Below, in pieces: positions 1 to 11,193 of a DNA stretch of 11,193 bases. This stretch comes from Chlorokybus atmophyticus. Lineage: Eukaryota; Plantae; Mesostigma and Chlorokybus algae. A program made the translations under genes and the position numbers. The DNA is taken from NCBI GenBank assembly GCA_009103225.1, contig RHPI01002558.1, forward strand, positions 1 to 11,193, written 5' to 3'. The notes below the pieces were generated by a model. It saw nothing but the letters and a program-made list of their open reading frames with translations, was not told where the DNA came from and ran no database searches. How positions within the stretch are numbered: the stretch's first letter is position 1; each line of letters opens with the position of its first letter.

Positions 1-101
1 ATCCACACCATGCCCTGCTTCTCCATAGTAGGAATGGACTTTGCGCACCCCCTTGAAGACAAGCTCTTCATGCCCCCACTCTCCACCTCTGACTTGGGCA
101 T
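1..101 (-). CDS. Internal exon of a minus-strand gene that runs off the left edge; reading frame and product uncertain
   Basis: Acceptor ttcaacAG ends at 102, and 1-101 is GC-richer than its flank. Two frames are open. Phase 0 reads MPKSEVESGGMKSLSSRGCAKSIPTMEKQGMVW, with 25 of 33 codons ending in G/C; it resembles the end of the Rieske domain of PAO/PTC52/CAO-type oxygenases (R-A-C-A-x-x-x-P-T-x-x-x-Q-G-x-x-W). Phase 1 reads AQVRGGEWGHEELVFKGVRKVHSYYGEAGHGVD. I could not find a Rieske CxH or CxxHGW exon upstream. Confidence 0.45.
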   Translation of the reverse strand, partial: MPKSEVESGGMKSLSSRGCAKSIPTMEKQGMVW

Positions 102-309
102 CTGTTGAATAACAAGATAATATATCTCTTATTCGTGGCAGCAACAGATGCACACTAACGTGTATAAACCAACCCGCATGCCCCGTAGCAATGGTAGGAT
201 TTAAAAGACTCTAATGCAAATGTAGGAAGCTACCAGAAAGGTGGTGGTAAAAGCGAGATCAAAAAGACGAATTTATGTCCCATAACCAAACCACCGTGAA
301 CATACTTAC

Positions 310-344
310 AAAGCAAAAGTTTTGCAATTTCCAATATGCCATCT
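310..344 (-). CDS. Candidate 35-nt mini-exon of the left minus-strand gene
   Basis: Flanked by ctgactcAG (ends 345) and a consensus GTAAGT donor (starts 309). It reads DGILEIAKLLL (exits phase 1) or MAYWKLQNFCF (exits phase 0); each joins in frame to one of the two readings of the 1-101 exon across a 208-nt intron. Confidence 0.35.
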
Positions 345-2007
345 CTGAGTCAGTGAGTAGTATAGGCTCGTCAAGTGTTTAAGTTGTTGTTATATGCATC
401 TCTTTGACATTAATACACAAGTTTCAAGCTAAAAACCTTTTGCGGCCACGTAAGGCCTTGCAGATTATATAAGGCCACAGGGGAAATACGATCTCCCACT
501 CTTTTTAACATATATCGTGTTTTACACAATTCAATCTTAAAACTTGCAAATGGTCTCACATGTCATTTCTTGCAGCCCAAAATAAAGCAATAGAGACTCT
601 TTCATTTGGGACAAAAAAGCGATTGTGAATATTATAATATCATTTAGCGTGCTAACTTATAAGCGCAAGTTGCTTGATGGCATTTGAGGCAGCTGTTATA
701 ATAAACCACAACCACGGTTCATTGTTCATCAAATGAAGCTGCACATATTCCTAAGATGAAAGCGCAATTTGCTTGATTGACCCGGATGATGTGTGCCGCC
801 GTCACCTTTGACCAAGGAAATTTAAGGCCTCTCTTTCATGAAACCTGCAGCTACCTGCATGTAGCTTTATCAATTAAATACCGTACGTATGAAGTCAGCA
901 AGTCATCGGGTTGCATGTACATTGGAAATCAATGCTCGGCAGAACCTATATTCATGCAGTTGAGGCATTGATTGTCAAGTTCTGCGTGACGGAACCATCC
1001 CCTTGCAACCAGATGTGTCACGTGGTTGTAGTGATGTTTATAGGACTAGGTCCAAAAATTTTCCTTGCGCAATTATATGTATCCAATTAAATCTTATTAC
1101 TGTGGGCAAGCTATCTTACATTAGCAAAAGATACTAACTTGATATCACCACGTAACATCGTTGAGAATATTGATTTAAAAATGATGTTTCAATGGATTAT
1201 GCTCTGCATGCATTAGACAATCTCATTTTTTCAAATATGCGATGACCATCCATTTACCTCACTAAGTAGTATGTAGTACGTTTATGAATCTATATTTATG
1301 TCAACGGTACTGTTAAATATGTTGGCTAACAAACTTTTCAAGCTTTTGAAGAAAAACAGCACACGATTCTACTGTGTGCTAATGCGATTTGTACGGATAT
1401 AATGTCTTATAATGTATGGCATGAAAGTGGCCCGTACTGATTCGTGCATTCAATGCACGTTCAATGCAAGTTGCATTCATTATATTCATAAAGAATGCAA
1501 GCGGATCCCCATTATCACTTGATACTCTTAACATTATTAAGAATTTAATATTAAAAAAATAGGTTTGATTACATGTCAACGCGCTTCAACTCATATACAA
1601 CTGCATAAAATGGTGCATAAAAATACTTTATGATTATAAAATGGTGGCCAAGCTTAAGCTTGTAATTGATGATTTAATGATGTGATGCGGTCTTAGCCAC
1701 GCCATACTTTACAGCCTGGATCACTTGATGAAAGAAGCACAATAATGAGCGTCTCGGATAAGCATCATCGATCGAGCTCTCTTATTATATATAAACTCAA
1801 CCATTTGATGTATGCAACACTACCCCTTATGAGCATAAGGATTGTAAAGATGATAATTCAAAGCCGATAAAGAAGACTGTGCAAACCATGCCGGCATGAA
1901 GTTGAGCATGCATGCCTTATACGTGAGGATCTTAGCATGCATATTCATGGTTATATTTATAATATGACTTAGGGTTAACAACAATGAAGAGGTTTACACC
2001 TTAAAAG

Positions 2008-2218
2008 CGTCATATGCTTTCTGTTTTGCAATTTTATAATCCGGCTGATGAACCCTCTTGTTATTCAAACAAATAAGTTAAAATGATAAGATAACGTGAA
2101 AAAAAAAAACCTTTTACGTTATCCGTCATATGCTTTCTGTTTTGCAATTTTATAATCCGGCTAATAAACCCTCTGATTATTCAAGCAAATAAGTTAAGAT
2201 GATAAGATGACTTAAAAA
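2008..2218. repeat. Direct tandem duplication of ~95 bp (2008-2102 and 2124-2218, period 116 bp)
   Basis: Hand alignment: the first 39 nt are identical (cgtcatatgctttctgttttgcaattttataatccggct), followed by 9 mismatches in the remaining 56 nt. An A11 run (2099-2109) lies at the end of the first copy. Confidence 0.95.
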
Positions 2219-2520
2219 TAAGGTAATGTTAACGTTATAAATGACGGTCCAATTCAAATGCATTGATACATTGCTCATTCATTGGTGTATCATGATATTG
2301 CTATGGTGTTTATTTGATGCTCATGCATGATGAACACGCACTTTATACGCAGCGCAAGTCATTTAACATATGATAGCAGGCTTTAAACATGTCAATAGAG
2401 TTTGGACAACACTTCTTGTGTGATTTACTATATTAGCACAATTCACCCTACAAATCCCAAGCTAGGTGACTTATACGTATTCCGGAAGGCTTCCATGCAG
2501 TACATGTACATGTATGCAAC

Positions 2521-2602
2521 CTTCACCTTCATCAACCTCCCGATGTTTGCGATTGTCTGTGGGACATTTCTCATTCGGGCAAACATCTGCCTTCATCTGC
2601 AT
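2521..2602 (-). CDS. Candidate first coding exon of the left minus-strand gene
   Basis: ATG at 2602 reads MQMKADVCPNEKCPTDNRKHREVDEGE to a GAAG|gttgca donor. It follows a GC-rich leader and is divergent from the ATG at 2805. A second frame (MFARMRNVPQTIANIGRLMK) is also open to a donor. I recognise no homology. Confidence 0.3.
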
Positions 2603-2804
2603 TCTGTGGGCGGCGGGGGCGGCGGTAACAGAGGCGAAGATTTTAGCCGCCCGGCTCGCTCCTTGTGTCGTTGCGCAACCTTGAGAAGCAACTTTAAGCC
2701 TCCTTGCCAAGGCGCACGCACATTGACACGTTGGGCTTTGCGTATGAGATTTGAGTCCAATCACTCAGTCACCCAATTAGATTGGAAACACAAAGCGTTT
2801 TTCC

Positions 2805-4512
2805 ATGAGTGGCCGGCTCGCCCTTGTGGCGCTGGTGTTGGCCGCCTTGATCAGATCATCCTATCAGCAGCAGCAGCATGATGACGGTGAGATTGTATGT
2901 ATGTGTGCATGTGCGTGTGTGCGTGTGTGTGCGTGAAATGTACGTGTGCCAAGCATGATGTTTTGTGCGGCTCAATCAGTCGACTTCACAATTGTTAGTT
3001 CTTAGTGTCAGAACTGTAACATTTCAGGCCAGGTATTGTGCACATTGTTGTTTTATGCATGCATGCATGCATGGCCTTGAAGGCTTTCAGGACCAGAGGT
3101 ATAGTCATGGTAGCTTGCTGCAGCATACGGATTCTCAGTGTGTCATGCCAGTGGTTATTTTTCAACATGCCCAAAATGCTAGTCACTTAGCTTGTGCGTC
3201 AGCTTTGGTTGACTCGTCTTGCTGGATGTGGGTGCGCAGTTGCTTTGGCAATCACAGAAGTGAGCAACTCGACACTTTTGCTCGAGGACTTGCAGATATC
3301 GGCTGGTAAACTGCGGCCGCCTTTCCAGCCTCTCATCTTCAAGTGAGTACGCGCTATCAAACTTATCAACAACATGCGCACGCATGCATGCACGTAGACA
3401 TACATGTCTACACACACGCACGCACGTGCGCCTCTGAACATGCACGCACACACGTGTACAAATACACACACATGTATACACGTGGGCGCATATGCACACG
3501 CAGACACAACACGCCCACATTGTATCCTCACAGGTACAATGTGACGGTGTCGAGTAATGTTGACAGCATCAACATTACTGCTTTTGCAATGGACCCGATC
3601 GATGCCGAAATTAGCGTCAATGGGACTTTTATTGCCAGTGGGTTTGCCTCACCTGCAATAGACCTGACCGAAAACGGTCTTACGGTTCTTATCATCCAAG
3701 TCACAAACACTGGTAAGGAAAGCCGTTTTGTTGTACATGCCATGCCACGCGTGCGCGTGCGTGCGTGCACATAATCTCTGCACACGCTTATGCGTGCATC
3801 TGCACGCACAAGCGTGTGCATGCACACGTACATGCGCGTTGAAACACGCACATGCGCACGCACACGCATGCGCGTATGCACATTTTATGTGGACATTGCC
3901 ATTGATGTCCGCTTTCTTTTTCCAGGAGAACGGAGGGCAATAGGCACGGTGGAGTATGTAATATCCGTGCTGCGGCCGAAGAAATCGACTCAAGGGAGAG
4001 GGGTGACCGCGGCGGGGGCGATCGCGGCCGGCGTGGCCGTGTTGGCCATGTACGGGCTGTGGTGGTACACACGACGGGAGGCTGAGAGCAACAGAGGTTT
4101 GCATGTGCCATGTGTATCGATAGCTTCATATGTGGGTTTGCGTGCGCACCAACGTGTGCGTGCGTGCGTGCGTGCGCGGCGCTTTATACATATCCATAAC
4201 AGCGCCATGCTCTTTGTGCATTCCTTGCTCACGTATGGACACTTTCATGACTGCATGTGCATCATTCATTCAGTGTGTGTTGTTGTTGAGCAACATGGAA
4301 GCAGTGGGTTCACGCAGGTAACAAGTTGCTGGTTGCTTGTGCCTGCTTGCTCTATGTTGTTGTTGCCTGTTTGCTGGATGTTTCACCTATGCGACATCCA
4401 ACTGTTGTTGTGCTGGGCAGCGCGCAAGAGATATGAGGACTTGCAGACGATGTACGGTTTGTTGGAAGAGTCGAGGCGGACGGCCGATGAGGAGAATCAA
4501 GCACACTCATAG
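2805..4512 (+). CDS. Type-I membrane protein of ~202 aa: signal peptide, cadherin-like beta-sandwich domain (PF12733-like), one TM helix, short cytosolic tail
   Basis: Exons 2805-2886, 3258-3342 (acceptor uncertain; 3240, or 3203 with a microexon, also keep frame), 3534-3712, 3926-4096 and 4421-4512. All introns are GT-AG with consistent phases; 609 nt total. Protein: MSGRLALVALVLAALIRSSYQQQQHDDEVSNSTLLLEDLQISAGKLRPPFQPLIFKYNVTVSSNVDSINITAFAMDPIDAEISVNGTFIASGFASPAIDLTENGLTVLIIQVTNTGERRAIGTVEYVISVLRPKKSTQGRGVTAAGAIAAGVAVLAMYGLWWYTRREAESNRARKRYEDLQTMYGLLEESRRTADEENQAHS. The pattern L-x-x-L-x-I-S-x-G-x-L-x-P-x-F...Y-x-V-x-V...I-x-V-N-G...I-x-V-T...Y-x-I-x-V-x-R matches my recollection of the Cadherin-like family. 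Confidence 0.8.
2893..2947. repeat. Intronic GT/GTGC-type alternating purine-pyrimidine microsatellite
   Basis: tgtatgtatgtgtgcatgtgcgtgtgtgcgtgtgtgtgcgtg immediately after the 2887 donor. Confidence 0.85.
3375..3510. repeat. Intronic CA/CACG-type degenerate microsatellite
   Basis: gcgcacgcatgcatgcacgtagacatacatg...cacacacgcacgcacgtgcgc...cacacacatgtatacacgtg fills most of intron 3343-3533. Confidence 0.85.
3745..3882. repeat. Intronic mixed GTGC/GCAC microsatellite containing an inverted repeat
   Basis: A GTGC-type tract is followed by a GCAC-type tract within intron 3713-3925. It includes the 19/20-bp inverted repeat 3779-3798 / 3801-3820. Confidence 0.85.
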
Positions 4513-5034
4513 TTTGTTTGTTTTGTGTTGGGTCTGTTCATTACATCACAATGTATGGAGACATCAAGCATCAAGTCTGAAGCGATATGTATAGTCACAC
4601 AAGGTCAAAGCCGAGCACATTCTGTGCATCAGATGTAGTTGATGACTGTATGTCGATTTGTTGGGAGTGCGCGTTTTATTGAGTGGCAACGTTTGCACGC
4701 TTGGTGGTGTAGCTAGAGGGTGCTTGAAGCGCATGGTGATTGGAGAGCTTGGTTAGGTGGTGCAGTGCGTTTAAGACTGGTGCTGAGGGTCATGCCATTG
4801 ATAGGTACAACCCTTACTACCTGGCAAGCACCATGCGACAATCACATTGTGGTCTCGCGAATGAACATGCACAAATGCAATGCGTCACTCCACAGCAACA
4901 CAATCGGCTACTGTACTTGACTAATGCGTGCCCAATGTGGTTAAGCTAACCTATCCAAAAACAAGCCGCTAGTAAAGCCAGTGTCATCGTCATGTTGATG
5001 TCCTATTGTGCATACTCAACCGCACGCACACACG

Positions 5035-7061
5035 TCACTTGCTTGTGTGGCTTGTCCACGAACCCCACCTTCCTCCGGAGTCGCTGGGCTTGGAAGCGTT
5101 GCTGGCAACGTCGTCCCCATCCTTGGGGATATAGTAGTTGCCCTTGTCCGATTGCACGGGTGACATCACCTCCGGGCTCTCTGCGCTTGAGACTTCAGGC
5201 GCAAAGTAACTGCCCAACGGGGCGTCGGTGGGAGCCATCTCACCCTGACACAAGCGTAGGTTCAGTGCGTGTGCATGTGCGTGTACGCGTGTGTATAAGT
5301 AGCATCTGCGGTGAACTTGTGGTTAGTTATGATCAGTCACCTGTTGGGTGCTTGGACCGGCTGCATTGACTTGGGCGTCGCGTGCGGGCTGCCTTGTGTC
5401 TTGTCCCCAGGTGGTGCTCTCACCTGTACGCAATGAGAGTGTCAGCCACCGAACTGCGCTTACTGTCAAGCTGTTTCCGATCAACAAGGTTGAGCAGTTG
5501 TGCGACACACATCCATAAACAACAGCTACCGCAGAAGCAATGCGCAGATAGTGTAGCGAACTGACAATTGCAACTGAGCTGCAGAAGTTGAGCTCTGGAG
5601 TATGGAAGTTTCGTTGTGAGTGTACAGCGCACAGTTATACAATACGTTTTGAGTTAAGTCTCACCTTCAAATGTGGATTCACTGCCTGTTGGTGCATACC
5701 ACCGCCCCAGCTCATCGTCGACTGGTTGGATGCAGTCTTCTGAGGGAGGCGGTGCAGGGGTGAAGTAACCGCCCTTAGGAGTGTCAACAGCTGCCATCTG
5801 CCAGGCAAAACGTTGGTACACCAGCCACAGCGCAGGGTAAAGTTGCTATTGCATGCTTCAGCTGTAGCTTACTTGGCCTTGCGGGCCCGGCCCAGCTGTG
5901 TTTAATTCGCCACGCTCGCGCTCGACTGTTGCCTGAGCACCCCATGTTGTGCTGTTACCTGTAAGAGAGGAGTGAGACAACGAGCACATGGTCCAGCACA
6001 TCTTGTGCATCTTTCTGCAAGGTGTTGTGACAGCAGCACTCACCAGTGAAGTTGGACTCTGTTCCCGTTGGATTGAACCATCGGCCCTGGTCAGATTCTT
6101 CAACAACCATGTTGGTAGGCTGCTCGTCGCCAGCTGGGGCAAAATACTTGCCACCTGAATTGGCAAGAAGGTACATTAGCTATCAATGACAAATCAACTG
6201 CTAGTTATTCTGAATCATCATGTGCAAGCTCAGAACAAGGCAGCTTGCCTGGTGCGTCTACTGCTGCTAAGTTGTCCGGGACAGACTGCGGGCCGGCAGC
6301 ATTCGGCGCACCGCGAGGCCGTGCATGGCTGGTCCAACTGCACACACACGACACTTGTCTGGAGTAGTGTACTTCCAACTAACCTACAATGCTCCGGCAA
6401 ACCCTCACAGGACGTTCTATTTGTCACATTGCCACTGATATGCCAATCCATCAGCAGCCCTGCATTTGTTGGCAAACAATACTACTTGCAACGTAGTGAC
6501 TGGCACACTGCACTGCGTGCATGAGTGCTTTACCTTCCCCAGCGTGTGCCTTCCATGTCCTTAGCAAAATCGCTTTCCTTGCCGGTGTTGCCAAAGTAGT
6601 TGCCCATGGGGGTTTCGACAGGCTTGAAGCAGTCATCGGTGCTGGAGTTGTCTGGAGCAAAGTAAGCGCCTCCAGGAGCACTCACGGGAGCAAGGTTTGA
6701 GCCGTCAGACGAAGCACTGCTGGCAGCATGGGGAGCTACCAATGTGCTCTGTCGCACCTGGCATGGCATGAATGTGTAAGGTATGGGCGTTGGACATTGC
6801 TCTTTTAGTGGTAACTTTACACACCGGAGGCTGCTGGCAGCTCCTATGAAGCCCTGATTTGAAAGCTTACTCGTTTGACTGAAGCTGGCTTGTGCAAGCG
6901 GCGGCATGCTGGCAGTGATTGTCTTCTGCAAGTCAAGCTGTCAGCTCAGCATTGCCTTCACCAATGACACTGCTTGGAGCAACAGTTGCATTGGAAAGTG
7001 TTGCTTACTGGAGGCCTTGACAAGGCAGGGACAGACAATGTGCGAGAGTGGACACCGTCAT
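5035..7061 (-). CDS. Uncharacterised 347-aa protein: predicted plastid transit peptide followed by four ~74-aa aromatic/Gly/Pro repeats
   Basis: Nine exons: 7061-7009, 6925-6871, 6757-6534, 6337-6249, 6154-6044, 5958-5873, 5797-5665, 5423-5341 and 5244-5035 (1044 nt, all phases consistent; seven GT-AG introns and one GC-AG). Protein: MTVSTLAHCLSLPCQGLQRQSLPACRRLHKPASVKRVRQSTLVAPHAASSASSDGSNLAPVSAPGGAYFAPDNSSTDDCFKPVETPMGNYFGNTGKESDFAKDMEGTRWGSWTSHARPRGAPNAAGPQSVPDNLAAVDAPGGKYFAPAGDEQPTNMVVEESDQGRWFNPTGTESNFTGNSTTWGAQATVERERGELNTAGPGPQGQMAAVDTPKGGYFTPAPPPSEDCIQPVDDELGRWYAPTGSESTFEGESTTWGQDTRQPARDAQVNAAGPSTQQGEMAPTDAPLGSYFAPEVSSAESPEVMSPVQSDKGNYYIPKDGDDVASNASKPSDSGGRWGSWTSHTSK. Internal check: RWGSWTSH is rebuilt across the exon 3/4 junction and recurs intact in the last exon. 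Exons 3-9 are well supported; exons 1-2 somewhat less. Confidence 0.85.
6155..6248 (-). other. GC-AG intron (94 nt) in the repeat-protein gene
   Basis: Donor CCAG|gcaagc and acceptor caattcAG|GT. It is needed to join AAVDAP to GGKYFAP in frame, recreating the motif seen unspliced in the other repeats. Confidence 0.8.
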
Positions 7062-7101
7062 TGCGCAACACGCCTCAGTAACAGAGGCTCCAATGACAAC
7101 C

Positions 7102-7237
7102 CTGCTCATGGCAAGGAAGCATATACACAACACTTAGACTGGGCTGAGGCACATCTTACGCATACAGCGCAGTGACCGTCTATGCCCTTGACACATGCAC
7201 GTGAGAAACTTGGAGGGCGGATTCAAGTTGACCTTAC
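7102..7237 (-). other. Probable 5'-UTR intron of the repeat-protein gene
   Basis: Consensus donor CTG|gtaagg at 7237 and acceptor gagcAG ending at 7102, 40 nt before ATG 7061. The upstream exon has no usable in-frame ATG. Confidence 0.5.
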
Positions 7238-7470
7238 CAGCTGGTGCAAGTGAACAGTGGCGGCCAACACCACCAGGCAAGTGAACTAAGCTGTTAATGC
7301 CGACAACAGCCTCAAGCAGCAGACAGCAACGCAAGCCACGTAAGCACTTAGGCAAGACAACGTGAGAATCTCAACATGTTTATGAAATTTTTCTGCCTAG
7401 ATTCAATCCCAATGCTGCGATCGTGATCCGTTTGTGAACTAACCGAGCCCGCTTTGACAATCTGGAGCAG

Positions 7471-7531
7471 CTAAACCCTAAACCTAAGCCCTGAGCTTGA
7501 GCCTAAACCTAAGCTCAAGCCTACACCCTAG
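7471..7531 (+). promoter_or_regulatory. Degenerate telomere-like (CCTAAA/CCTAAG/CCCTAA) array including a telo-box (AAACCCTAA, 7473-7481), in the divergent promoter / NDUFA6 leader
   Basis: ctaaac cctaaa cctaag ccctgag cttgag cctaaa cctaag ctcaag cctaca ccctag ends 5 nt before ATG 7537. The repeat is seen directly; the regulatory role is inferred from plant telo-boxes. Confidence 0.6.
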
Positions 7532-7536
7532 CTGTG

Positions 7537-8749
7537 ATGGCGGCGGCGGGGAAGGCGGCGGCGGCCGCTGCGGCCGCCACGCGAGCCGCCGTCTTGCCGA
7601 CGTCGCAGAGCGGCAGCGTTCAGGAGGCATCGTCGAAGGCGAGGGTAAGAGGGACCCCATCATCATGCTGGTTGAGGGGAGCGTGTGAAAGGCTGCGGTG
7701 TTGTGTTGCTGAACTTATGTGTACTTGTTTCCCTGTGTGTGTCGGCATTCTGTGTGCAGAAGTTCTTCCATGAGATTGCCAGGGCTATGCCGGCGATCAT
7801 GAAGGCTTACAACCTGGAGAACACGATTGAGGCTCATCAGCTGCTGTCCGCTGTGGCAGATGAGTTCCGGCGCTTTGCGCACGTCTCTAACCCCAAGGTA
7901 AAGCCATGCACTGTCCAGATTGCTTTCACTAGAAAGCGAGCACAGTGTCTACAATGCATTCATCAGTTAGTACAGATTGTGCATGTAACAAGTTACTCAC
8001 GCAAGTGAAAGTAATAATCCTCGTATTGTTTTGCTACTACTTCCATGCGCACAGCCGTCAATTGGTACATGCAGGATTTTTGCATTTGCGGTGATGTGTG
8101 CCTGACTTGTAAGTGGCTGCCCAGCGAGTACTGTACTTATCAGCACTTGTTGACTGTTATTCAGTCAGTCACTACAATAGTAGTATGGAAATGTCAGACT
8201 GTTTGTGGTCCTATGTACACTACGATATGGTTTGCGGCTGCTGTTATCGTACGTATGTTACAGCTGAGTGTAAGTTTAATACTGCCAACGAATCTTACAT
8301 GCAGCGCAACCGGTGAGTGAATTGAAGCGGTTGTACACTTTACTGAGCAGCACGATGTACGCAATGAGTCTGTTCAGCGTAGTTCTAATTAGAGTTGTAA
8401 GCCAAAACTGAAATCAACGTTGCTGTGTCCGTTGAGACAATGAGCTATTGGTTGCTTGTTGCAGCTGTCAAGAGCCAGCACATCTCATGTTTTGCCAAGC
8501 GGCATCAGCAGCTCACATCCACATTGACACTTGCGAGCGCATGCTCAAGGGTGAACCGCGCTGAGACTGACATTGTCTTAACAGGCCATAGATATGCTTG
8601 TTTACAAGGGCAGGGAGGAGCTTTACGACACGGTGATGCATTACAAGCAGCGGCATCACTTGCTGACGACGTGGGTGGAGCGATACAAACAGCGCACGCA
8701 GCCAAAGACATCAGACTTCCTTACCAGATTCTACCAGGGCAACAATTAG
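7537..8749 (+). CDS. NDUFA6: NADH dehydrogenase (ubiquinone) 1 alpha subcomplex subunit 6 (B14, LYR-family), 136 aa
   Basis: Exons 7537-7644, 7760-7897 and 8585-8749 (phase-0 GT-AG introns). Protein: MAAAGKAAAAAAAATRAAVLPTSQSGSVQEASSKARKFFHEIARAMPAIMKAYNLENTIEAHQLLSAVADEFRRFAHVSNPKAIDMLVYKGREELYDTVMHYKQRHHLLTTWVERYKQRTQPKTSDFLTRFYQGNN. It contains hallmark motifs: FF..R..P.IM..YNL, HV.[DN]PK.ID[ML]L..KG.EEL, KQRHH, and C-terminal SDFL..FY, as in plant B14. Confidence 0.96.
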
Positions 8750-9986
8750 ACAATTGTCCTAAATTGCTTTGTACTACTAATCTTAGCAGTAAGCATTTTG
8801 CAACTGCACTTGGGTCTTGTCATGGATTACATGCATACGACAATGCCACCAAACACATGTGTACATGTTAACATACAGGAGTCTGATCTAATGCAGAAAC
8901 CATGCCTTGCTTTTGTCTCATCAGCTTTGCTGTATGCAACACCGGCTGCTGACAATGGACCGAACAACTGTTATGGTCCTAGCATTCAACATTAGAGACA
9001 ACCGCAACACAGCTGGAACTGTTGCGCTGAGCCTAGACTTGTCAGCAAGTGCACCTTGCTAATGACAGAGTGTACATCAATGAAAAGGGCCCAATGCGCA
9101 AGGCAAATTGTGTAAAGCATGTGGTTGCTAAGGAACTTGCTCTTGGCTGCTTTGCGTTCTTGTATTCCTCTTGATTAACTATATGAACTTTCGTGTTGGT
9201 TACTTTCTCTTTTCGGTTTATGAGGCAATCGCATACAGCAGCATGCAAGTGCCCGAAGCAATAAGCCCTGCAAAAGTTTTGCATGGGCACATTTCACAAA
9301 ACCAACATGCGGTCATACCGACACCGACTGAAACACTATCATTGTGTAATTAAAGACTCTTGATAGTTGCATCTGTTGTGCACAACAACATGTCCTGGGA
9401 TTCCTTTGTGGGAGTACGTGCAAGCTACTCTCCAGTCATCAAATAGTTGCTGTGCTGCTGGGTGCACACGTTCTTACTCTGATGCAGCCACTTAATAGAC
9501 TGGTCACAAAGGTCACCAAATGTGTTTGACCACTGCAAAGGGAATAACACCATGTCTGCACACAGACAACCTCAAGAACAATTAAAGCCTCAAGAACAAT
9601 TATGGACAACAGAGCATTACTGCCAACATCATGGGTTGTACCTGAGGTCTCAAGCTACGCCCTGAACACGGAATATCATGTACATCTGTAGAGAGAACTA
9701 TTAGGTTGTAGACACAGTCGTTTTGATATGTAACACATTAAACGCGCACGCACAATACAGCACCGCAACTTTCGGGCGTTGTGGGCTTAAAATCACAATT
9801 GCGACACGGATGTCTGCGGGTGACCTTCACGCTTTCTCGGGCTGCAAAACTCTCTTTGCTACAACTCCCTGCACTGCCTTTCGGCTCAAGTTGAACGAGG
9901 AGCTGCAAACTCCCTTTTGGCAGGTATACTGGAAAACACAACTGTGTATAGCTGTCTGCAACGCCAGCTGGCGCCCGAGCTTGTCC

Positions 9987-10554
9987 TCAACCTCCTAGTT
10001 GTCTGGACACTTTCATCGCGTAGCGTGTCGGCCCGTTGATCCCCACCCATGGCGTGTTGCCGTCCTCAACAGTGTAAGAGGGCGCCGAAGGTTCCACTGG
10101 AGGCAGAGAGCGCTCCCTGGCGAGTCGTCTGGCTTCAAGCTGCTGTGCCCGCTTTCGTCTCACTGAGATGAGAGCGAACCATATGAGCCAAAAACAAATG
10201 CTACATGAAAAAGCATTGTTGTAAAGTGAGGTGATTGCACTTACGCAATGCTGCTCGAAGCGTTGGCCAGCTCCCGAGCGAGACCCACGACCGGAGTCCG
10301 TTTATCCATACAAGTGTGCTGTCATTTCTGCCACACGCAAGATGTCAATGCATGCACCTGTCAGGCAAGAACTAGTTTCGATAATGCATATGCCGCATGA
10401 GAATCGGGAACGAACATTCAAGGAACACATCAACTCACATGAGTGAAAATGTCCAAAGGCGACGAAGTTCTTGCAAACACGCAGGTCCGTTGGCTTGTCC
10501 ATTGCGATCCTGCCAGAACCAAGACTCTTCCCTTCCTTGCGTTGCCCGTGCCAT
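9987..10554 (-). CDS. GYF_2 (DUF4339)-domain protein, 124 aa in the minimal model
   Basis: Exons 10554-10439, 10327-10245 and 10162-9987 (GT-AG introns of 111 and 82 nt, phases consistent). Protein: MARATQGREESWFWQDRNGQANGPACLQELRRLWTFSLINDSTLVWINGLRSWVSLGSWPTLRAALLRRKRAQQLEARRLARERSLPPVEPSAPSYTVEDGNTPWVGINGPTRYAMKVSRQLGG. The pattern W-F-W...G-x-x-x-G-P...E-L...I-x-x-x-T-L-V-W-x-x-G-x-x-x-W matches GYF_2. An acceptor lies 7 nt before the ATG and a donor at ~11114 implies an upstream leader exon. The C-terminus may extend further (see findings). Confidence 0.82.
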
Positions 10555-11137
10555 GCTCAACCTAAACACAGACACGCATACAAACAATAAGCGTCAGCCC
10601 ATCTGGATAGGCAACAAGCACCGCAATAATCATAACGTGGCAACACGCGTGCAGACAACACAAGCGCCACTGACAGCAAGAGTGCCTCTCCTGGCATGCA
10701 GTTGGTGACGGCTGAACAAAGCTTGCAGAATTGTTAAGAGTTATCGCATGCCTCAAGTCAAACACGCTAAGCACCACAAAAGAAACGCCCGAACAGCCGA
10801 TGGGCGTGCAAATAATGCTTGCTGCTTGCAAACCGGTACATGACGTTAGCATTGCACACGTAGCTTTCCTGTGGCAACAATAGACTAAACAAGTACAAGC
10901 ACAGCCAATATTGTGGTAATAAGATGCCTTATGCGTCAAGTTTATATCTTGGCAACGACGCCAGCTCAGCAACCCAAGTCGCAACCAAAAGGGCAGAAAC
11001 CACCAGCAACACACGGTGAGCGCAAAGCAAACAGCACATAACCCGAAGTACCAGCCAGCTGCAAGCACCTACCCCAACCACCGACGACCCCTCTTAACAG
11101 CAAGCCAATCTCACCCAAAGCCCCACGAAGTCAAACA

Positions 11138-11168
11138 CCCGCCCGTCCGCCCGCCCGCTCGCCCGCCC
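11138..11168 (-). repeat. Six GGG tracts with 1-5-1-5-1 loops (GC-box-like; potential G-quadruplex)
   Basis: Minus strand: GGG C GGG CGAGC GGG C GGG CGGAC GGG C GGG, upstream of the GYF_2 gene's putative leader-exon donor. Confidence 0.7.
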
Positions 11169-11193
11169 GCGTCACGCCCAAGCCAAGAGCGGC

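Follow-up and report, generated by a model that had tools for sequence, protein, structure and literature searches.

In the genome of the alga Chlorokybus atmophyticus, an orphan gene encoding a repeat protein is located on the minus strand of contig RHPI01002558.1 (assembly GCA_009103225.1). The stretch of DNA analyzed here, referred to below as the window, comprises positions 1–11,193 of this contig; it is eukaryotic, and no single long open reading frame (ORF) spans 5035–7061. In the minus-strand translation, the motifs picked out in an earlier reading of the DNA alone (the sequence-only reading) are distributed over three frames, the pattern that splicing of the gene would produce. To resolve its structure, transcript contigs from runs of two independent RNA studies (X1, 2021; X2, 2013) were aligned to window positions 4700–7500. 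The alignment revealed ten exons and nine introns, with zero mismatched letters between the contigs and the genome across the ten exons. GT–AG borders are present in eight of the nine introns, and the intron at 6154–6247 (minus strand) becomes GC–AG after a 1-nt shift of an ambiguous cut, an assignment that both transcript contigs support. The leader of the spliced transcript is 121 nt long and free of AUG; translation from the first AUG, at 7061, to the stop codon at 5037–5035 gives a precursor of 347 aa (36.5 kDa) with a mature part of ~31 kDa. The span 5035–7061 assigned to the protein in the sequence-only reading corresponds to ATG 7061 through the stop at 5035, i.e., the same 347 aa, and matches this RNA-derived model.

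The public model of the gene (EukProt Chlorokybus atmophyticus / JGI Chlat1) is 351 aa long and differs solely by an extra KLPC at the GC–AG intron, where the use of an alternative donor places these residues within repeat 2, inside the first of its two aromatic motifs; the X1 and X2 contigs both favor the shorter, 347-aa form. The exon used as a query was complete in runs X1 and X2 and partial in X3 and X4, all of which carry the same species label. It was not found in three 2018 RNA runs with that label, which may represent another cryptic species or simply low coverage. The assembler word depth of one contig, taken by itself, was 115 in X1 and 14.3 in X2. The orphan repeat gene is genuine, nuclear, and expressed in Chlorokybus, of which the sequenced strain is listed as C. 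atmophyticus.

The encoded protein contains four tandem repeat units, which begin at residues 58, 134, 207, and 281 and have lengths of 76, 73, 74, and 67 aa, respectively. The sequence-only reading had recognized all four, placing each start one residue earlier (57, 133, 206, and 280). Each unit carries two G-x-[YW]-[FY]-x-[PN] motifs, located 22–24 residues apart, and one W-G motif. The eight aromatic motifs lie at residues 66, 88, 142, 164, 215, 237, 289, and 313, separated by gaps of 22, 54, 22, 51, 22, 52, and 24 residues; TGxESxF and N[AT]AGP occur in repeats 1–3, and W-G in repeats 1–4. These elements had been described in the same way from the DNA, and every motif string quoted at that time, including two aromatic motifs per repeat, is present in the protein.

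Next, the units were compared with one another at the protein and nucleotide levels. Their amino-acid identity is 30–50%, and the pairwise local alignment scores of 70–156 (z 7.6–22; 26–29 ± 5–6 for shuffled sequences) were reached by none of 1000 shuffles. Ten columns are invariant across the four units, namely A2, P7, G9, Y11, F12, P14, G31, S41, W52, and G53. Nucleotide identity between units is 43–57%, dS (synonymous divergence) is 1.26–3.86 or not computable, i.e., saturated, and the same codon is used at just 28–50% of the identical residues. Since the motif positions are kept while synonymous sites are saturated, the motifs appear to have been preserved by selection and not through recent copying; likewise, the low DNA identity and the saturated dS indicate old duplications. 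Judging from these alignments, the four tandem repeats are ancient, and their aromatic motifs look constrained. In repeats 2 and 3, one intron precedes the STTWG exon and another falls at the boundary of the repeat; these matching positions are offset by 4–5 nt and lie in different phases, which is compatible with a two-exon unit that was duplicated long ago and whose boundaries drifted afterwards.

The repeats are distributed over the exons of the minus strand as follows. Exon 1 (7237–7318) consists of 5′ untranslated region (UTR) only, with no AUG in any frame, and is joined in the X1 and X2 contigs from 7237 to 7100, where exon 2 (7009–7100) begins; the latter contains the start codon (7061–7059) and presequence residues 1–18, and exon 3 (6869–6925) contains presequence residues 18–37. 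Exon 4 (6534–6755) completes the presequence, of which residue 53 ends at 6707, and encodes most of repeat 1 (from 6694), with its two aromatic motifs, TGKESDF, and RWG. The end of repeat 1 (NAAGP) is encoded by exon 5 (6248–6337) together with the first 8 residues of repeat 2 (from 6270), and the GC–AG intron at 6154–6247 follows. Repeat 2 continues with its core in exon 6 (6042–6153; GKYFAP ... GRWFNP, TGTESNF) and its tail in exon 7 (5873–5956; STTWG ... NTAGP), the counterpart of exon 9. Similarly, the core of repeat 3 is located in exon 8 (5659–5797; GGYFTP ... GRWYAP, TGSESTF), the counterpart of exons 5 and 6, and its tail in exon 9 (5340–5417; STTWG ... NAAGP). Exon 10 (4856–5243) comprises repeat 4 (5238–5038; GSYFAP ... 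GNYYIP ... RWGSWTSH), the stop codon at 5037–5035, and a 3′ UTR extending to about 4856.

Upstream of the gene, 7469–7530 contains a short array of 2.5 copies with a period of 25, made up of degenerate telomere repeats of the plant type that read TTTAGGG/TTAGGG-like on the strand of the gene. The array is situated about 150–210 nt upstream of the transcript 5′ end (7318), in the promoter region, and could represent promoter elements similar to telo-boxes or else the remnant of an interstitial telomere. A plus-strand open frame at 7513–7770, which starts MAAAGKAAAAAAAATRAAVLPTSQ..., points away from the orphan repeat gene. Possibly this frame is exon 1 of a divergently transcribed neighbor, which would have an Ala-rich presequence and would share with the orphan repeat gene an intergenic region of about 200–250 bp.

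To search for relatives of the protein, several sequence collections were employed. No Pfam family was matched by the whole protein at E ≤ 10 or by four exon pieces at E ≤ 1, and a sequence profile search of the PDB yielded no relative, its top matches being nanobodies at chance level (E 0.19–0.59). An exhaustive HMMER search with the end of the presequence and repeat 1 against 1.84 billion cluster representatives returned the protein itself and two weak matches, while word-seeded searches of 5.8 billion 90% clusters, with the full protein and with repeats 2–3, returned itself alone. A scan of JGI metagenomes with the protein gave 209 pattern matches, of which none was confirmed. In the collections searched, the protein is lineage-specific and has no detectable relatives. 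This agrees with the sequence-only reading, in which the protein was called unrecognized: no family, solved relative, or homologue was found in any collection searched. The protein's one-sequence 90% cluster does not include the 347-aa form obtained from the RNA contigs; the RNA runs thus appear to be missing from that protein collection, which points to a thin coverage of streptophyte algal transcriptomes there. Other Chlorokybus species may have orthologues, and Mesostigma may have a diverged one. The nearest neighbors in the ESM Atlas (scores 0.55–0.75, with recognition far under the reliable range) are green-algal hypothetical proteins as well as small plastid proteins such as Lir1, CP12, and TSP9, a weak hint of a green-algal, small-plastid-protein flavor.

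The two weak HMMER matches were examined individually and rejected. The bacterial protein P0002 (707 aa, E 1.2e-4), a WDG..W / VSC..C.AVG repeat protein, matches over 33 residues, and this similarity was attributed to compositional chance. The soil-catalogue fragment P0003 (117 aa, E 3.4e-4; PGGAAFAPE ... DAFCPVENP) was not accepted as a homologue because its relatives P0004–P0006 share one ~27-residue element in unrelated contexts, a pattern commonly seen when repetitive DNA is translated; for P0003, the records contain no contig that encodes it. The element common to the soil-metagenome fragments P0003–P0006 (QNASDVLCPGGAAFAPERTELSDAFCP) looks like translated repetitive DNA that resembles PGGxYFAP...PVExP by chance.

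The N-terminal part of the protein has the character of an organelle-targeting presequence. Residues 1–53 contain no Asp or Glu, 7 Arg/Lys, and 12 Ser + Thr (23%), with an isoelectric point (pI) of 11.4; the absence of acidic residues and the number of basic ones had been reported from the DNA and were verified by count. The presequence is rich in Ser, Ala, Leu, and Arg; its residues 1–18 are uncharged, the first charge being R19, and it includes 4 prolines. As the sequence-only reading had also stated, there is no transmembrane (TM) segment, the highest 19-residue Kyte–Doolittle mean in the whole protein being 0.44. The best 9-residue mean of 1.40 corresponds to no hydrophobic core of signal-peptide grade, and no hydrophobic segment follows the presequence, i.e., there is no lumenal hydrophobic domain. 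From these features, residues ~1–53 most likely direct the protein to an organelle. The destination is probably the chloroplast stroma, in view of an uncharged extreme N-terminus, a hydroxylated presequence with prolines, and the lack of a second hydrophobic targeting domain. A secreted glycoprotein or peptide precursor was ruled out by the missing signal peptide. The protein also falls outside the arabinogalactan and hydroxyproline-rich glycoprotein class, having a Pro/Ala/Ser/Thr (PAST) fraction of 0.39–0.40 (criterion above about 50%) and no endoplasmic reticulum (ER) signal peptide.

The mature part is acidic (pI 4.26), with 41 Asp + Glu vs. 19 Lys + Arg and a net charge of −22, in agreement with the acidic G/P/S/A linkers described previously; the full-length pI is 4.74. 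Polar or disorder-promoting residues account for 81% of its composition, aliphatic residues for 9%, and aromatic residues for 9%, and it falls on the disordered side of the charge–hydropathy boundary. AlphaFold2 modeling of the whole protein gave a mean predicted local distance difference test (pLDDT) score of 42.6, a predicted template modeling (pTM) score of 0.13, and zero secondary structure. A model of one repeat, suggested in the sequence-only reading and built here on the four-repeat alignment, reached a pLDDT of 50.4 and contained no helix of at least 4 and no strand of at least 3 residues; it displays a 3-residue helical turn at low confidence and two 2-residue strand bridges around positions 26–34. 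Over the whole-protein and single-repeat models, pTM was 0.13–0.15. Because the alignments are very shallow, this outcome fits disorder but does not prove it; considering composition and modeling together, the mature part is most likely intrinsically disordered.

The reading that we favor, with roughly even confidence, is that the protein is a lineage-restricted, organelle-targeted (probably plastid), acidic, disordered multivalent binder. It builds on a directly established gene model, expression, repeats, motif conservation, and absence of relatives, to which we add, by inference, disorder, targeting, and multivalent binding. According to the proposed mechanism, the ~53-residue presequence would carry the precursor into an organelle, probably the chloroplast stroma, and each repeat presents two Gly-x-aromatic-aromatic-x-Pro motifs 22 residues apart and a Trp-Gly site. 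Between the motifs lie Gly/Pro/Ser/Ala/Asp/Glu spacers, the acidic ones of which would hold the chain soluble and extended. The eight aromatic–proline motifs could then dock repeatedly on a folded or polymeric partner, or on each other, in a sticker-and-spacer type of binding, and the four Trp-Gly sites might provide additional contact points; Rubisco and starch are two among many candidate partners. Tic62 and TROL carry Ser/Pro-rich repeats binding ferredoxin–NADP+ reductase (FNR), i.e., stromal short linear motifs containing proline and aromatic residues, to which a soluble enzyme is tethered in a multivalent manner, and may serve as a working analogy for the action of the Chlorokybus motifs. 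Their motif is different, however, the protein to which their repeats are joined is folded or membrane-bound, and we know of no homology between these repeats and the Chlorokybus protein.

Of the plastid-targeted multivalent protein proposed in the sequence-only reading, the array of conserved aromatic motifs and the organelle-type presequence stand, whereas plastid targeting is plausible on composition only. Several points weigh against a plastid-targeted disordered binder. By composition, the presequence might also be a mitochondrial one. The constraint on the motifs is deduced solely from repeats compared within one gene, and absence from the protein collections may partly stem from the thin coverage of streptophyte algal transcriptomes. 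In addition, low AlphaFold2 confidence obtained from one or four sequences is no proof of disorder.

We regard it as possible, but rather unlikely, that the protein is instead a disordered organellar or cytosolic protein unrelated to carbon fixation, such as a mitochondrial protein, a stress or desiccation protein, or a tether of another stromal enzyme, comparable to the Pro/aromatic FNR-binding repeats of Tic62. Chlorokybus is a subaerial alga, the basic, acid-free, Ser/Ala/Leu/Arg-rich traits of the presequence are common to chloroplast and mitochondrial presequences, and nothing in the data indicates one specific partner. A mitochondrial location is, however, disfavored by the uncharged first 18 residues and the 4 prolines, which would be more in keeping with a transit peptide of the chloroplast than with the amphipathic helix of mitochondrial targeting. 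The aromatic, Trp-rich composition of the Chlorokybus protein is unlike that of protectants of the late embryogenesis abundant (LEA) type.

Each ~74-residue unit might, alternatively, be a small β-rich folded domain, for example one of aromatic β-hairpins like those of bacterial glucan- or cell wall-binding repeats, a likeness that the sequence-only reading had drawn. The G-x-W-[FY] element with a Gly a few residues later resembles GxWYYF-type hairpin repeats, the Gly-x-Trp-aromatic cores and their spacing of about 20 residues are comparable with repeats of the CW_binding_1 type, and the two short strand bridges around positions 26–34 of the single-repeat model would be compatible with such a domain. 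Nevertheless, we consider this fold improbable: the protein has no Pfam match at E ≤ 10 and no sequence relative in the PDB, its aromatic pair is followed by x-Pro, and at 9% aliphatic and 81% polar or disorder-promoting residues it is far too aliphatic-poor for a hairpin fold. AlphaFold2 likewise produced no stable fold (pLDDT 42–50, pTM 0.13–0.15), and the likeness to glucan-binding β-hairpins was not borne out.

The sequence-only reading had further linked the protein to the pyrenoid, Rubisco, or starch, i.e., to a scaffold of the Chlorokybus pyrenoid acting as a matrix-condensing Rubisco linker or a starch-sheath tether, with aromatic–proline stickers replacing basic helices. We judge such a role quite unlikely. 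In its favor, Chlorokybus possesses two pyrenoids, one of them with a starch sheath (PMC8611356). In the literature searched, no separate pyrenoid linker of streptophyte algae has been described, and the known linkers are order-restricted, disordered repeat proteins without mutual homology, a profile that the Chlorokybus protein probably shares. The FLIPPer criteria, the search logic behind CsLinker and SUPA1, comprise at least 3 repeats, a spacing of 20–120 residues, a largely disordered chain, and a pI > 8. The Chlorokybus protein has four repeats of 67–76 aa (z 7.6–22) and motif gaps of 22–54 residues, both within these limits, and its chain is probably disordered, but its pI is far below 8 (full-length 4.74; mature 4.26, net charge −22). 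Instead of α-helical, positively charged stickers, its conserved elements are Gly/Pro-flanked aromatic pairs, and no helix of at least 4 residues is predicted, whereas the stickers of SUPA1 are described as positively charged helices and EPYC1 and CsLinker bind via helices. A regular-expression search of the protein detected no [DN]W[RK]xx[LIVA], looser W[RK]xx[LIVA], or KWSP, consistent with the lack of the Chlamydomonas [DN]W[RK] motif noticed earlier, and Pfam detected no carbohydrate- or cell wall-binding repeat. The protein lacks two defining traits of known linkers, a basic pI and a predicted helical sticker, and with its acidity, its lack of predicted helices, and the absence of a glucan-binding Pfam match, the tie to pyrenoid, Rubisco, or starch found no support. 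We also regard it as quite unlikely that acidic chains with aromatic–proline stickers organize the pyrenoid matrix or starch sheath, perhaps by docking on RbcS isoforms or a basic partner.

Comparison with individual linkers shows the same mixture of shared and divergent traits. EPYC1 of Chlamydomonas, CsLinker of Chlorella, and SUPA1 of Ulva are, like the Chlorokybus protein, nuclear-encoded, lineage-restricted repeat proteins of about 30–35 kDa. They contain three or more repeats in tandem, in which brief conserved elements follow one another at distances of tens of residues within low-complexity spacers, and they have no enzyme domain. They differ in being basic (pI > 8 filter), while the Chlorokybus protein is acidic (pI 4.3), and in binding Rubisco via α-helical stickers, described as positively charged in SUPA1, of which none is predicted in the Chlorokybus protein; the three proteins have no sequence homology to it, and none of their motifs occurs in it. 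PYCO1 of Phaeodactylum is a repeat protein with KWSP stickers that can bind Rubisco and itself (PMC13655443). It resembles the Chlorokybus protein in its repeats and in stickers with an aromatic residue adjoining a proline, but KWSP is absent from the Chlorokybus protein and no homology was detected. The plastid type and targeting route of PYCO1 also differ from those of the Chlorokybus protein. In the hornwort Anthoceros, RbcS itself serves as an innate linker, RbcS-STAR, through a coiled-coil extension at its C-terminus; this is the sole described streptophyte Rubisco-condensing device and therefore a relevant comparison for Chlorokybus. Unlike this extension, which is part of RbcS, the Chlorokybus protein is separate, has no RbcS domain (Pfam), and contains no predicted helix of at least 4 residues.

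Finally, a young or drifting orphan gene without a selected function, as its singleton status in all protein collections searched might suggest, is hardly credible, given that the motifs are retained across repeats with saturated synonymous sites, two studies show correct splicing of all nine introns, and from the first AUG onward the ORF is unbroken.

Elsewhere in the window, a long imperfect CACGCA/CATACA-type tract of low-complexity DNA extends over 3180–4130, with a Tandem Repeats Finder (TRF) period of 18 at 3820–3882, and yields many spurious Cys/His/Arg-rich ORFs on both strands. The block at 1000–2500 is AT-rich, with 34–36% GC compared with about 50% elsewhere, and contains a 116-bp direct repeat at 2008–2238 (2 copies, 85% identity); this block may represent intergenic spacer DNA or what is left of a mobile element after decay. 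Rfam gave no match in the window.

For streptophytes, the one described mechanism of Rubisco condensation is the hornwort RbcS-STAR extension, and all characterized linkers that we know of are lineage-restricted repeat proteins beyond the reach of homology searches. Against this background the orphan repeat gene is one candidate only, and it departs from the traits that predicted real linkers. If a scaffold role were true, the protein would be the first known of two kinds, an acidic, non-helical scaffold for Rubisco or starch and a separate pyrenoid scaffold in a streptophyte alga. A confirmed Chlorokybus scaffold of such different chemistry would broaden the rules by which pyrenoids are designed for introduction into crops. 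The firm value of the analysis lies in an RNA-verified model of an orphan repeat protein, in which the GC–AG intron is resolved differently from the public annotation, and the evenly spaced, conserved aromatic motif of this protein invites a binding study.

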